Source: Bugula neritina
Lineage: Eukaryota; Animalia; Bryozoa
Assembly (NCBI GenBank): GCA_964035545.1
Contig: OZ037773.1
Span: 2,819,751-2,883,750, forward strand
Length of the DNA: 64,000 bases
Reading direction: 5' to 3'
The notes beneath the pieces are model-generated. The model was not told the origin of the DNA and did no database searches. It saw only the letters and a list, made by a program, of their open reading frames with translations. Below are positions 379-31,068 of this stretch, piece after piece (positions within the stretch are counted from its first letter, which is position 1; each line of letters starts with the position of its first letter). The translations under genes were made by a program, and so were the position numbers.

Positions 379-3300
379 TTGGAGAGAGCATCAGATGGGT
401 AGCAGCGACCGGAACCAGGGACAGAAATGGTGTCACAGTTGGTGGCAATATCTCCCTCACATGATGCTGTGTAGAGCTCTGAAACAGAATGGAGATAAAT
501 GAATACTTTACAAGTAACTGTGTATTATAGCAAAGAGTTATGATGTATATATATTATGTACCAGCAAATGTGAAAGACGATGTAGCTGTGTCAACTTGAT
601 AGATTGAGAAAGTATCGTCTGCCACAGCCTCATTGAAGGTCAAGGTCAACTCCTCGTATGTATGAGTAGCCGAAGTAGAAAGAATGGACTTTATTCGTAC
701 CATGTTGTTGCTTTCTTCAACACAACTAAAAATAATGTTTTAAATTCTAAAGCATACTATTGAAGCAGTTTAGCAGAAGACAACTCCAGACTTCAGGAGA
801 AAACCTCTTCACAGTATTGAAAATAATATAAAGTAGAACTTAAGAAATTACAGGGAGCAGCCGTGGTCTAGGGGTTAAAGCGTTTGCTTTGTGAACACGA
901 AGTCACGGGTTCGAACCCCGACAAAGGCCATTGGTGATGTTAAGAAGAGCATCCAGTCATAATTGCTCTTGAGCCTCATTTAAACAAGTCCTTAGCCCAG
1001 TCTAACAAAAACCCTTTCCATCAGGGGTTTCTCACAGAGATAGCGACTATAAACTTGCGTGAGATTTTTTTAATAAATTACATATAACATGTCTCATTGG
1101 TGTAGCTAACAACAGAAATAATATTAGTTTATCAGCAATCATCTGTCAGTTAAATAGTATGTTTTACAGATAGCATAAAAACACCTTCTGCTACTAACTT
1201 TGTCATATCTCAAAGCCTGTGTACTCTAAATGTTTTGATGGTTGAGTAGGAGGCGTGGTCTGACCCAGCCTACATAGTTTCACTCCAAATATCTTACCTA
1301 ATACTTTCAACGGAATAGGTCTGCGCGCCAGGTAAAACAGAAAAGACACTCTGAAGAGAAGCTGTGATTCCTTTTGCAAGGCTAGAGTAAACGTCAGAAG
1401 TGGAATCATTAAAATCCTGGCTACATTGCATCTCCATGACAACCAAGATAACAGCATATTCCACTACAACAAATCATCTCAAATGTTCCCACATGCACAA
1501 CTGTATGCTAGAATGTTTGTTAAAAGGCATTTGCCCTACCCAAGTACATATTTCTATATATTACAAGTTGAAAAAAACATTGAAAGCTTTTGAATACTCA
1601 AAAACTGACGCCCAACCTAGCATTCAAAAGTGTAAACTTTATCGAAAAATCGACATTCAGTTTAACGAAAATGTTGGAGCAAAACCTAACCAGTGTCCAG
1701 GAAGATGTTTTAGTGACACTCAAAAGCTGTTCAAGAATAAAACTACCATCATTTGTTGAAATGGAGTACCCCTGGAAACTCACCATACAAGTTGTCTACA
1801 ACTGGAATGGGCGTGACGTCTAGCTTAGAGTAACATTCGTTACAGCAGTCTCTGGCAACCTGCTCATCGTCACAGTTAGCATCTGCACACGTATCGACTC
1901 TGTTGCCAAAAGGACACATCTCCACATTGTACCCTACAGTAAGTGAAAAAGGGTTAGCATGCACATTAGACCTAGCTCTGTAGACCCTTACACAGTACCA
2001 GTGTGAAGTGTAACCCACATTCTATTTATATTTACACGAAATGTGTTTAAAATAATTATTACGACAATAACTAAATTGTTTGCAAAAATACATTCTGCCA
2101 GTGTGTGTACAGTGTATATACCAGTGTATGCAATCATATGCTTAGAGCATGTGTGTTCATGAGTGAATGTGTATACATTTGGTCAGGGCATACAAGCTAA
2201 AACATGACAATCAATAAGGTAAAACTGAATTGACCAAATAACTTTAAACGAGGCTATACATCTGCATATATAATCTTCTCCTGACAAACTGGTCAAACGG
2301 CACAATAGCTAGAGAAGAGCTTACCATTAGCTTTCCTATCATAATACGCTTCAGTGCAGGTGGCACAGCATTCCTGGATTGTGCTGAGGGCGTAGCACCC
2401 ACTTGGCGACTTGCCGGCCTCCAAGGAGCAGGTGGCACTGTTGGCGTTATCGGATTGTCCACAGGTGGGCGCTGGATCTGTTACAATATTAGCTAATGTC
2501 ATATAAAACTGCTACACAACATGATATAGTATATGCAGTATAGTACAATTCAATATATAACCTATTGTATTACAAATAAATATTACATACTATTTTAGTG
2601 CAACTTTTTAGGTGGCAGATTGAAGTGCATATGATTTCAAGAAAAAACATTATTACATTAAAGCAATGAGCTTAGCACGTAGGTTTTAAGTTAATGTCCT
2701 GATTATTACACACAGGGGGATGTGTTGGAAACAAAGCCTGAATGAACAACAACTATTTTTGTTATTAGAGCTAAGGCTAAACAGCTACTAAATAGAGATA
2801 TATTATGATATGTATTATATTATACTATATTATATACCATATTACCTTATATATAATTATTATAAACTTACCAGTAGAGGTAACATGACTGGTAGTTGTA
2901 GGAGCTGCAGTAGAGGAAGTGGATACGGAAGTTGTTTGAGAACTACCTGCAGTTAAAGTTTAGCAATTTCATAACTGAAACATACGAAGAATCTGACAAA
3001 ATTATATTCTTGTAGGCTGATAGCATAAAAGCACATACAAGGTAGGCAAACTCCAAACAATGTCAGCAAACTAATTTTGAAATGCAATTTGCAAGAAAAG
3101 CAAACAACTAGATCAATATCAATTCATCACTAGAGGTTCGCATCTGCAAGAATAGTAAAAGATTGTCATCCTAGAAAAGCTAAACGTACTCTAACATTTC
3201 TGTTACAGGCAAATAAGCTAGATTAAACTGATACAGTAACCATATCTATGTTAAAACTACATACATTATGGATTATAAAAACTAAAAGCCTAAAATAAAA

Positions 3301-30300: not shown

Positions 30301-31068
30301 TTTCACCTAATGGACACCATGTGACACAAGGAAGTGATGTAAAACTTGGGCGTGTGCTGCTAATTACAAGTATAACGTAGAATCAGAGCAAGGCGTGGAA
30401 TCCAACAATGTATACAAGCAATATAATAAAATTTAGAATTAGCCAACTTTTAGAATTATTGATCAGATTGGCAAAAGTCTAAATAGCTGTATGTGTCAAA
30501 TTCATCTTCTATAAATTATTGGTATAAATATCTATACTGGAAAAGCCACACAGGACAGTAAGATGGTGAGCTCATTCTTTGCCATGAGGCATGAAGGTCA
30601 CAAAATTTGGATGCAAAATTTACAAAAAAATCTTCCCGACATCTTAAAACTTGTTAGAATAACATAATTTTAATATCTGCAGCATGAAAATTTAAAATTT
30701 ATGACAAAGATGCTACTTTTATTCTATTTTTTGAGAAAAGAGAAAAATGTGTTCCAATGTTTGCACACTCTTACACATATTTGGTAACTTTTCTAATCTG
30801 CTTACTTTGCATGAGAGTGACAAAAACTTTAAAGAAAATTTGTGCATTCAAACAGCAACATTTTGAAGTAGAAAATTTCACTTCACAGTTTGTATAAGTT
30901 TCAAACAGTTTCATAATTATGTAAATAATAAACAAGAAGCAAATAACCCACTATTTGGAGTGCCACACCCTAAATCTATAAAGTAAACATAACCAACTTA
31001 CAGGATGCAGTTAGCAATGTCAGCGCTGTCAAAGACAGAAGGAGTGGAGCTCCTTGACGGCTCCTCAT
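379..31068 (-). CDS. Multi-exon secreted/surface mucin-like protein with >30 PLAC-like six-cysteine repeats, Thr-rich linkers and a SEA-like domain (3' end lies beyond the window start)
   Basis: First exon 31002-31068 reads [22 protein letters not shown] (signal-peptide-like) followed by gtaagt. GT-AG exons checked by hand give one continuous frame from ~21.2 kb down to 379: 21112-21248, 20744-20894, 20392-20546, 20055-20205, 18210-18373, 17888-18038, 16702-16859, eight exons in 10437-16416, 8076-8203, 7456-7591, 7046-7189, 6502-6642, 5827-6030, 3407-3829, 2872-2946, 2325-2477, 1784-1933, 1298-1463, 562-725, 379-478. More CCxxC exons lie at ~21.9, 22.5-22.7, 23.0-23.2, 23.75, 24.35-24.5, 25.0-25.1, 25.7-25.8, 26.2-26.3, 26.8-27.0 and 27.66-27.8 kb. 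Exon phases between 27.8 and 29.8 kb were not fully resolved. Confidence 0.8.
562..1463 (-). CDS. Two exons (1298-1463, 562-725) encoding a SEA-like domain of the mucin-like gene
   Basis: Spliced translation [110 protein letters not shown] resembles the SEA pattern (F..D.SS..Y..L...I...L..VF..LPG ... VD..S..F). Splice phases are consistent. Confidence 0.65.
853..1070 (+). mobile_element. tRNA-derived SINE, full length with probable target-site duplication
   Basis: Pol III box A (tggtctagggg) and box B (ggttcgaaccc), central ttggtgatgttaagaagagcatccag, T-rich tail. Flanked by taagaaattaca (841-852) and taataaattaca (1071-1082). Related copies occur elsewhere in the window. Confidence 0.8.
3407..3829 (-). 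CDS. Mucin-like gene exon: two Cys modules flanking (TVTTVP)n repeats
   Basis: Within ORF 3282..3965. AG acceptor at 3830-3831 and GT donor at 3405-3406, phase 1-1. Confidence 0.8.
8237..10085. repeat. Intronic satellite, 31-bp unit acagctagtattatatatagtataacacgtt, ~59 copies
   Basis: Highly homogeneous tandem array. Confidence 0.98.
10437..16416 (-). CDS. Array of eight near-identical exons ([49 protein letters not shown] type)
   Basis: Exons 16270-16416, 15498-15641, 14551-14697, 13610-13753, 12824-12970, 12464-12610 and 10807-10950 are 144 or 147 nt, phase 0-0, flanked by tttag/gtaagt. Exon 10437-10596 is phase 0-1. The flanking intron sequence is duplicated too. Confidence 0.88.
10981..11359. 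mobile_element. MITE, PIF/Harbinger-like termini
   Basis: Imperfect ~34-bp TIRs aggcctggccccacgctcgtgagaatcacacgaa / ttcgtgtgattctcacggtcgtgaagccaggcct. Paralogous introns show the empty site catcctactc. Confidence 0.8.
11445..12325. mobile_element. Palindromic MITE (family 2) interrupted by a nested insertion
   Basis: The left arm (..aacatggcctagtctggagggagcgttcagcat..) is complementary to the right arm (..atgttgaacgccttctccggactacgccatgtt..). Uninterrupted relatives lie at ~13975-14425 and ~14920-15370. Confidence 0.75.
11690..12130 (+). mobile_element. Solo-LTR-like 441-bp insertion nested in the MITE
   Basis: TGT...ACA ends with an 11/15 inverted match, internal tataaaa (~11898) and aataaa (~12035). 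Absent from the other MITE copies (ggcctt[t/c]atattta). No clean TSD. Confidence 0.55.
13037..13460. mobile_element. Palindromic MITE (family 3), 4-bp TSD ATAA
   Basis: gggtcattttatttaatttagtacacactggaa ... ttccagtgtgtactaaattaaatacaatgagct. Empty site cgagataaatattt at ~16477. GGG terminus plus 4-bp TSD is suggestive of Sola2. Confidence 0.85.
13975..14425. mobile_element. Palindromic MITE (family 2)
   Basis: gaaaatgtcaattggaaaaca ... tgttttccaattgtcattttt inverted arms, near-identical to ~14920-15370. Confidence 0.75.
14920..15370. mobile_element. Palindromic MITE (family 2), co-duplicated with its host intron
   Basis: Near-identical to ~13975-14425 including the flanks. Confidence 0.75.
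15708..16120. mobile_element. Palindromic MITE (family 3), same insertion site as 13037
   Basis: Same termini, TSD and flanks as 13037-13460. Confidence 0.85.
16702..20894 (-). CDS. Triplicated exon pair (B: [14 protein letters not shown]...CCLFC; C: [11 protein letters not shown]...CCNFC) of the mucin-like gene
   Basis: B exons 20744-20894, 20055-20205 and 17888-18038 (151 nt each). C exons 20392-20546, 18210-18373 and 16702-16859. Block ~17820-18420 closely matches ~20000-20600. Confidence 0.85.
16998..17417. mobile_element. Palindromic MITE (family 3), independent insertion
   Basis: gggtcattttac ... gtaaaatgaccc termini with flanks atca/acca. A degraded half copy follows at ~17600-17806. 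Confidence 0.8.
18590..18990 (-). mobile_element. Degraded non-LTR retrotransposon (RTE/CR1-like RT) fragment
   Basis: Minus-strand remnants [20 protein letters not shown] and [10 protein letters not shown] appear in the expected order, broken by stops and deletions. Confidence 0.45.
23950..24340. repeat. (TA)n microsatellite with (CA/TA) flanks
   Basis: Pure TA run at ~24135-24256. Confidence 0.97.
27410..27490 (+). mobile_element. Truncated SINE head of the same family
   Basis: ggaagcagacctggtctaagggttagagc...gtggttcaaat resembles 853-920. Confidence 0.55.
28112..28199. repeat. 14-bp tandem repeat tgttgactaagtac
   Basis: About six copies. Confidence 0.8.
29488..29692. repeat. 22-bp tandem repeat cacttactattagcgtatagca
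   Basis: About nine copies, preceded by TAC-rich low complexity from ~29260. Confidence 0.9.
31002..31068 (-). CDS. First coding exon (signal peptide) of the mucin-like gene
   Basis: ATG at 31068-31066, hydrophobic [11 protein letters not shown] core and gtaagt donor. It joins in phase to exon 29720-29760 ([14 protein letters not shown]). Confidence 0.7.

Follow-up and report, generated by a model that had tools for sequence, protein, structure and literature searches.

What kind of protein arises when one small cysteine-rich module is encoded by exon after exon of the same locus? This question is raised by a stretch of 64,000 nucleotides from the bryozoan Bugula neritina (GenBank assembly GCA_964035545.1, contig OZ037773.1, positions 2,819,751 to 2,883,750), hereafter called the window. 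An earlier note on this DNA, made from its letters alone, had proposed a giant secreted protein with more than 30 PLAC-like modules, mucin linkers and a SEA-like domain. Our analysis favors, with a probability of roughly 0.6, a single gene on the minus strand that encodes a giant secreted mucin-like glycoprotein of at least 34 PLAC-type knots and a SEA-like domain, with a role at a surface or in a matrix.

A minus-strand gene of six-cysteine modules and Thr/Ser/Pro linkers

The six frames of the window, which is AT-rich (about 35% G+C), contain 45 CCxxC motifs. All but four of them (41/45) are found on the minus strand and, with few exceptions, within the interval from 1.8 to 27.9 kb; from this concentration we conclude that the gene reads from high to low coordinates, a direction that the earlier note had left unstated. 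The open frames with CCxxC motifs also bear Thr/Ser/Pro runs, and introns are present. Exons were first chained automatically, with scores for splice sites and codon usage. At high thresholds exons were lost, at low thresholds tiny false exons were gained; the final chain was curated by hand with the help of reading-frame displays, the rule that junctions must preserve module integrity, and the homologous protein of a second bryozoan, Watersipora subatra. The resulting 38 exons extend over about 31 kb, from the first ATG at 31068 down to 379, the last donor inside the window (Table 1). Their 5888 coding bases translate into 1962 amino acids. All borders are AG/GT, the phases are consistent, the frame is free of stops, and every exon junction completes a six-cysteine module. 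Because the donor at 379 falls in the middle of a module, cutting module 35 after three cysteines, the gene continues past the window start.

How regular are these modules? The model holds 34 complete copies, 25 in single exons and nine split between exons, in addition to the partial 35th; the claim of more than 30 modules thus stands, far beyond chance. Every complete module fits the pattern C-x6-10-C-x4-14-C-x6-11-CC-x2(3)-C over 28–39 residues, and together they account for 204 of 209 cysteines. The six cysteine columns are invariant in an alignment of 59 modules, and an Asp follows the first cysteine by one to three residues in 23 of the 34. A subtype with the motif C-x-[YWF]-G-[DN], here called YGD, comprises modules 3, 5, 7, 9 and 34 and alternates with ordinary modules in the N-terminal third of the protein.

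The remainder of the protein bears out the mucin linkers of the earlier note, as well as its signal exon, which has a hydrophobic core and aligns with the N-terminus of the Watersipora protein. Linkers range from 4 to 56 residues (the five longest have 34, 44, 47, 53 and 56) and consist of 62.6% Thr/Ser/Pro, with 38.7% Thr and 2.8% Lys+Arg; in 26 of the 34, these three amino acids amount to half or more of the residues. With 257 Asp+Glu versus 73 Lys+Arg, the mature protein has a calculated isoelectric point (pI) of 4.05, the modules themselves containing 17.3% acidic versus 4.4% basic residues, and Thr makes up 19% of the protein. NxS/T sequons number 34 in the mature protein, 29 of them within modules. 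No catalytic or other Pfam domain, protease and TSP1 included, was found on any exon piece of the model, in agreement with the absence of a catalytic domain noted before; nor did the exon pieces match the VWD, C8, TIL and CK domains of gel-forming mucins. Pfam searches with the raw open frames gave no meaningful match.

Does this protein have relatives elsewhere? We searched 1.84 billion representative proteins with a profile built from 19 modules of the window and retrieved eight relatives (E≤0.001), all without functional names and none over a Pfam cut-off. Three are isoforms of an ‘uncharacterized protein’ of Watersipora subatra (XP_067938521-3, 1276–1301 amino acids). Two others are a protein of 208 amino acids from the nemertean Lineus longissimus and one of 225 from the annelid Owenia fusiformis, and the remainder are transcriptome or metagenome fragments. 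The Watersipora protein contains 25 modules that hold 150 of its 151 cysteines. In a blastp comparison it aligns with our model from the signal peptide onward (29% identity, E = 6e-130) and, sharing the signal peptide, the module order N,N,Y,N,Y... and the acidity and pI, it is a true homolog. Module-by-module scoring assigns modules 1–3 to Watersipora modules W1–3, module 5 to W9, 6 to W10, 8–13 to W12–17, 20–27 to W18, 28 to W21 and 30 to W23. This collinearity provides independent support for exons 1–31 and would, taken by itself, suggest a bryozoan, most likely a cheilostome, as the source of the DNA. The two proteins differ in module number (25 versus at least 34); the Watersipora protein lacks the eight-copy array described below and the SEA-like domain, and contains an RRKR site and, ahead of its stop, a final module. 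When the Watersipora protein or one of the small relatives (P0001) served as query in a word-based search, the only match was the query itself. The notion of a lineage-specific protein is therefore only partly right: a collinear giant homolog exists in Watersipora, and small proteins with the same module occur in a nemertean and an annelid.

The same locus of a related taxon is represented by a metagenome contig of 937 nt (L001), which is 82% identical in DNA over window positions 21456–20490. Exons 13–15 are covered without a single indel and with all cysteines kept, whereas the introns contain 49 gap columns. The small relatives, which come from Lineus, Owenia and marine samples (P0001, P0003, P0004, P0006, P0007 and P0008), are unnamed secreted proteins of two to eight modules each; they consist of alternating ordinary and YGD-type PLAC-like modules only and have no mucin linkers.

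PLAC or ShKT?

The PLAC domain is usually present once, at the C-terminus of ADAMTS proteases, ADAMTSL/papilin proteins and the convertases PCSK5/6, and its function is unknown. The earlier note had called the modules PLAC-like and had treated ShKT as the competing assignment. Which of the two applies? By cysteine pattern the modules side with PLAC, since they end in CC-x2-C throughout and not in the C-x3-C-x2-C of ShKT. PLAC (PF08686) is also the only recurring Pfam match, found on seven of the 59 modules with a best E of 0.006, all below threshold; ShK (PF01549) matched two modules (best E 0.014) and Crisp one, again below threshold.

To compare folds, module 10 (23069–23170) was modeled by AlphaFold. 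With the 59-module alignment the prediction is a small three-helix knot with a predicted local distance difference test score (pLDDT) of 94; the 59-module alignment was required, as the 19 window modules alone yielded an unusable model (pLDDT 62). Its nearest neighbors among ESM Atlas models are PLAC-bearing ADAMTS10, PLAC/TSP1 proteins, ADAMTSL/THSD4 and PCSK6, with template-modeling scores (by query) of 0.77–0.81 and root-mean-square deviations (rmsd) of 1.0–1.4 Å over 33–34 residues, in a comparison of prediction with prediction on both sides. We take the aligned part to be the PLAC domain because it is the only domain common to these proteins. The next cluster consists of nematode ShKT models, at 0.72.

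Solved structures give a different list. The top five Foldseek hits for module 10 are all ShKT peptides (E 3–9), and in a scan of 48,161 chains of the PDB all ten with Z≥2 are ShKT or CRISP cysteine-rich domains (Z 2.7–4.3). The best match is 6ckf (Z 4.3, rmsd 1.4 Å over 33 residues); others include hookworm and Brugia ShK-like peptides, the toxin-like domain of MMP23, the cysteine-rich domain of CRISP-2 and the antimicrobial peptide aurelin. Sequence profile searches of the PDB with the 19 window modules retrieved weak matches to ShKT peptides only (E 0.03–0.07), and those with the 59-module alignment nothing meaningful.

We read the modules as PLAC-type members, marked by adjacent cysteines, of a predicted ShKT-like fold, so that the choice between PLAC and ShKT turns out to be a false one: the cysteine pattern is of PLAC type, while the matching solved structures are all ShKT or CRISP domains. 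With PLAC the modules share six cysteines, the CC-x2-C ending, similar spacing, an Asp that often follows the first cysteine, and a predicted fold that superposes; the departure lies in arrangement, with at least 34 tandem copies separated by mucin linkers and no protease or TSP1 here, versus a single C-terminal copy beside TSP1 or a protease there. With ShKT/SXC and the cysteine-rich domain of CRISP they would, by the predicted model, share the design of a small helical knot with three disulfides, and no solved structures other than these matched. Besides the ending of the cysteine pattern, what separates them from ShKT is the channel-blocking Lys-Tyr dyad of a toxin subset, which is absent here. 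A paper that states a common fold of PLAC and ShKT was not found in the literature; the prediction ties PLAC to the ShKT/CRISP fold and yields a testable idea of its disulfide topology.

A SEA-like domain and the probable continuity of the gene

The putative SEA domain is split over two exons (1463–1298 and 725–562) whose phases fit both neighbors. Exon 36 matches Pfam SEA (PF01390) over profile positions 3–46 of 106 with an E of 4.8e-4 and 20.7 bits. This score is below the cut-off of 26.4, as may be expected of a query that is half a domain. In the PDB the same exon finds a SEA fragment of ADGRF1 (E 1.2), and among the 30 named ESM Atlas clusters nearest to it, 17 are SEA clusters (score 0.92). 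The label SEA-like, already given by the earlier note, is a reasonable, tentative name for exons 36–37.

Several observations weigh against a single gene for a PLAC-type, SEA-bearing secreted glycoprotein. Not one module reaches the Pfam cut-off for PLAC of 26.4 bits: module 10 scores 13.7, and the highest score, 19.1, belongs to the small relative P0008. The fold searches gave uniform match lists but weak statistics (Foldseek E 3–9, Z<5), because the model has only 34 residues. Exon 37 alone has no Pfam match. An autoproteolysis motif of the G/SVVV type, which occurs in many SEA domains though not in all, is absent from the translated exons 36–37. The part of the protein encoded in the window contains no transmembrane-like stretch (no 19-residue window with a mean hydropathy >1.6). 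The gene model derives from genomic sequence only, the sole public run with this locus being DNA (Logan contigs); its contigs agree with the assembly over the exon array and are too short for counting copies. Finally, the Watersipora protein stops two modules beyond its counterpart of module 30, without a SEA domain; it offers no match for modules 31–34, the SEA-like domain or the modules downstream, and these could belong to a second gene.

Could the region then hold two or more adjacent paralogous genes? The first, the Watersipora ortholog, would end near modules 30–32, and a second would comprise modules 31/33–34, the SEA-like domain and the modules downstream. We consider this unlikely, though it has to be taken seriously. 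Beyond module 30 no clear module orthologs are seen in Watersipora, and if the donor at 7046 remains unused, the frame stops six codons on (open frame 7026–7220). The two longest gaps between exons (2672 and 2233 nt) lie in this region. Moreover, exons 30–35 all enter in phase 1, exons 30–34 being of phase 1-1, so agreement of phases alone cannot prove continuity; and at 6727 an ATG begins a frame that is first hydrophobic and then enters the linker exon. On the other hand, donor 7046 and acceptor 6642 are in phase, and at this very position the Watersipora protein passes from the orthologous module into a similarly worded Thr-rich linker and on to another module. No other convincing signal-peptide exon lies between 8100 and 300, nor did the profile search uncover a second multi-module protein of Watersipora. 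As for the ATG at 6727, we judged it to be the translated pyrimidine tract of the 6642 acceptor, and a gene start at this site is retained only within the two-gene alternative. We infer a single transcript that probably runs on from module 30 through the SEA-like domain.

Proposed role and growth by exon duplication

What might a single secreted glycoprotein of this kind do? The signal peptide would direct it into the secretory pathway, where each module would fold into a small helical knot with three disulfides. The Thr/Ser/Pro linkers would be densely O-glycosylated and thereby stiffened as spacers. The product would be an extended, hydrated, protease-resistant and strongly negative polymer, beads on a bottle-brush, in which the SEA-like domain is followed by further modules past the window start. 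Such a molecule may well lend structure or a barrier function to an apical extracellular layer, be it surface coat, cuticle, mucus or the organic matrix of the skeleton; we infer location and function alike from the predicted protein.

The nearest described design is that of the TES-120 mucins of Toxocara canis (Tc-MUC-1 to -5), proteins of 176–316 amino acids in which two to four tandem six-cysteine ShKT/SXC domains flank a single Ser/Thr-rich mucin core (PMC3611597). Common to both are secretion, here predicted, and the combination of tandem six-cysteine domains with mucin stretches. The Bugula protein differs by its at least 34 modules of PLAC type, a linker between each, and the SEA-like domain; it belongs to another phylum, and no sequence homology was shown. 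A ShKT domain in a pedal-mucus protein of a limpet has likewise been read as non-toxic (PMC7333891).

The other near analogs are the SEA-bearing membrane mucins (MUC1, MUC3/12/13/17, MUC16): their long Thr/Ser/Pro regions are O-glycosylated, and EGF-like modules flank their SEA domain. The Bugula protein resembles them in its Thr/Ser/Pro regions and in a SEA-like domain placed between small cysteine-rich modules. These flanks are PLAC-like rather than EGF-like, however, and there is no GSVVV-type motif and, in the window, no transmembrane segment; the SEA-like domain lies in mid-protein, with more modules after it.

As far as we searched, the architecture is new, with one uncharacterized bryozoan counterpart, and known is the general combination of six-cysteine ShKT-type domains with mucin regions. 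The earlier note's view of an undescribed protein holds to that extent, all relatives being ‘uncharacterized’, and neither a paper on tandem PLAC arrays nor one on such a bryozoan protein was found in the literature. In the Bugula protein the PLAC-type knot, known almost exclusively as one domain at the tail of ADAMTS-type and convertase proteases, would be the chief constituent of a giant glycoprotein; the occurrence of such knots in small, protease-free proteins of a nemertean and an annelid suggests that they have a structural or binding role of their own. Proteins of the bryozoan surface, cuticle and skeleton are almost unstudied, and here is a candidate gene with a clear ortholog in a second species.

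Should the protein instead be assigned to the mineralized skeleton? As an organic-matrix protein of the skeleton or cuticle of a calcifying bryozoan, it would use acidic knots to bind Ca2+ or carbonate mineral and linkers as elastic spacers. In mollusc nacre, Lustrin A, in which cysteine-rich modules alternate with Pro-rich spacers, and mucoperlin resemble what this reading requires. The strong acidity (pI 4.05, modules 17.3% Asp+Glu versus 4.4% Lys+Arg), the same pI in the homolog of Watersipora, a calcified cheilostome, and the repeated bead-and-spacer design would all fit. Yet mucins and surface coats are usually acidic too, two small relatives come from animals that are not known to mineralize, a nemertean and a tube-dwelling annelid, and no bryozoan skeletal proteome with a protein of this kind was found in the literature. 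We regard this role as decidedly improbable.

Far less credible is a polyprotein that is cut into free ShKT/PLAC-like peptides with toxin-like or antimicrobial activity. The fold does match ShKT toxins and aurelin, the Watersipora protein has one RRKR site, and by language-model features it comes nearest to nematode multi-ShKT proteins (0.85, a lead only). A toxin-like or polyprotein role is nonetheless unlikely, because the linkers, rich in Thr/Ser/Pro and with 2.8% Lys+Arg, lack regular dibasic sites, and a Lys-Tyr/Phe dyad in the loop between the third and fourth cysteines is seen in just one of 34 modules; the modules are also acidic, unlike cationic channel blockers or antimicrobial peptides.

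How did a gene for a giant glycoprotein of this design reach its present size? Eight exons (16416–10437), of which seven are of phase 0-0, encode near-identical modules in exon-plus-intron units that are up to 95% identical, and the whole array corresponds to a single Watersipora module, W18. Upstream of it, a pair of modules termed A and B (exons 14–19) is present about three times, with adjacent copies about 91% identical. These comparisons indicate that the gene grew by tandem exon duplication, of one module exon to eight copies and of a two-module pair to about three, where Watersipora has single modules, and it may serve as an example of protein growth through recent duplications. Could the symmetric tandem exons, which might be gained or skipped without a frameshift, be a cassette for length and sequence variation in a polymorphic molecule for self/non-self or microbe recognition in this colonial animal? 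We think this highly improbable, as a known recognition domain is absent from the model and the pooled ratio of nonsynonymous to synonymous changes (pN/pS) among array copies, about 1.0 on so few changes that it is uninformative on selection, gives no sign of diversification.

A broader proposal, which we put forward as tentative and rather doubtful, is that these knots form a spiralian family of their own. An ancient two-module N-Y unit, present in nemertean, annelid and bryozoan, may have been expanded in bryozoans by exon duplication into a SEA-tethered mucin of at least 60 modules that builds the coat or cuticle of the zooid; its symmetric arrays would give rise to length polymorphism, and the family would link PLAC to ShKT as a CC-shifted variant.

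Table 1. Exons of the predicted Bugula neritina gene, in order of transcription (window coordinates).
Exon	Encoded feature	Position	Strand	Remarks
1	ATG and signal peptide, 22 codons + 1 base, hydrophobic core	31002–31068	−	donor gtaagt; aligns with Watersipora N-terminus
2	first three Cys of module 1	29692–29760	−	joined to exon 3, gives six-Cys module orthologous to Watersipora module 1
3	module 1 end, module 2	27660–27808	−	Watersipora module match
4	module 3 (YGD type), 44-residue Thr/Ser linker, module 4 start	26800–27048	−	
5	remainder of module 4, module 5 (YGD type) start	26176–26338	−	
6	module 5 end, linker, module 6 start	25687–25822	−	
7	module 6 end, module 7 (YGD type) start	25012–25148	−	
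8	module 7 end, poly-Thr linker, module 8 start	24345–24529	−	
9	module 8 end, module 9 (YGD type) start; phase 0-0	23646–23801	−	found by hand; restores N/Y alternation; orthologous to Watersipora modules 12 and 13
10	module 9 end, module 10 (modeled), module 11 start	22960–23230	−	AlphaFold pLDDT 94 for 23069–23170
11	module 11 end, linker, module 12 start	22498–22690	−	
12	module 12 end, Thr/Pro linker	21871–21962	−	
13	module 13	21112–21248	−	indel-free in metagenome contig L001
14	module 14 (B type of A/B pair)	20744–20894	−	conserved in L001
15	module 15 (A type)	20392–20546	−	
16	module 16 (B type)	20055–20205	−	
17	module 17 (A type)	18210–18373	−	
18	module 18 (B type)	17888–18038	−	
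19	module 19 (A type)	16702–16859	−	
20	array copy 1, module 20; phase 0-0	16270–16416	−	
21	array copy 2, module 21	15498–15641	−	
22	array copy 3, module 22	14551–14697	−	exon-plus-intron unit 95% identical to next copy
23	array copy 4, module 23	13610–13753	−	
24	array copy 5, module 24	12824–12970	−	
25	array copy 6, module 25	12464–12610	−	
26	array copy 7, module 26	10807–10950	−	
27	array copy 8, module 27; phase 0-1, exits array	10437–10596	−	
28	module 28	8076–8203	−	best match is Watersipora module 21
29	module 29	7456–7591	−	
30	module 30	7046–7189	−	last clear Watersipora ortholog (module 23)
31	linker only, Thr/Ala/Pro/Val	6502–6642	−	similar Thr-rich linker at same position in Watersipora
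32	modules 31 and 32, 53-residue linker	3407–3829	−	
33	Ser/Thr linker	2872–2946	−	
34	module 33	2325–2471	−	
35	module 34 (YGD type)	1784–1933	−	
36	SEA-like domain, N-terminal half	1298–1463	−	Pfam SEA match
37	presumed C-terminal half of SEA-like domain	562–725	−	phases fit both neighbors; no Pfam match
38	first three Cys of module 35	379–478	−	donor at 379

Intronic repeats and neighboring features

The introns contain remnants and repeats of several kinds. At 16545–16661 and 18453–18554 (minus strand) lie partial copies of an A-type module exon, reduced to its 3′ end with CCxxC and linker; they look like pseudo-exons left behind by the duplications. Three intron stretches of the eight-copy array (11037–11436, 13037–13436 and 15637–16236) are very high-copy dispersed repeats, with contig depths of 8,000–55,000 in the DNA run versus about 115 in unique parts. 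Between exons 27 and 28, a 31-bp minisatellite (8235–10085, 59.7 copies, 97% matches) is open in all three minus-strand frames because of its period only. The intron between exons 8 and 9 contains an (AT)n tract of about 168 copies (23946–24281). At the start of intron 2 (29486–29692, minus strand), some nine 22-bp units stand in tandem, about six of which repeat a consensus-like 5′ splice site, AGTAAGTGTG, the rest being degenerate; as the real donor is the first copy, the units form an array of decoy donors.

About 3 kb upstream of the gene, on the opposite strand, an open frame of 140 amino acids (34191–34613, plus strand) consists almost entirely of Thr/Ser/Ala over a 15-bp repeat and may be another mucin-like exon or a simple repeat. 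It is followed at 41419–44438 by a histone cluster, in which H2B (minus), H2A (plus), H4 (minus) and H3 (plus) are each an intact single open frame. Large exons of coiled-coil and SH3 type occupy 46686–62000 on the minus strand, including an open frame of 561 amino acids (52428–54113), and fit a RIM-BP gene.

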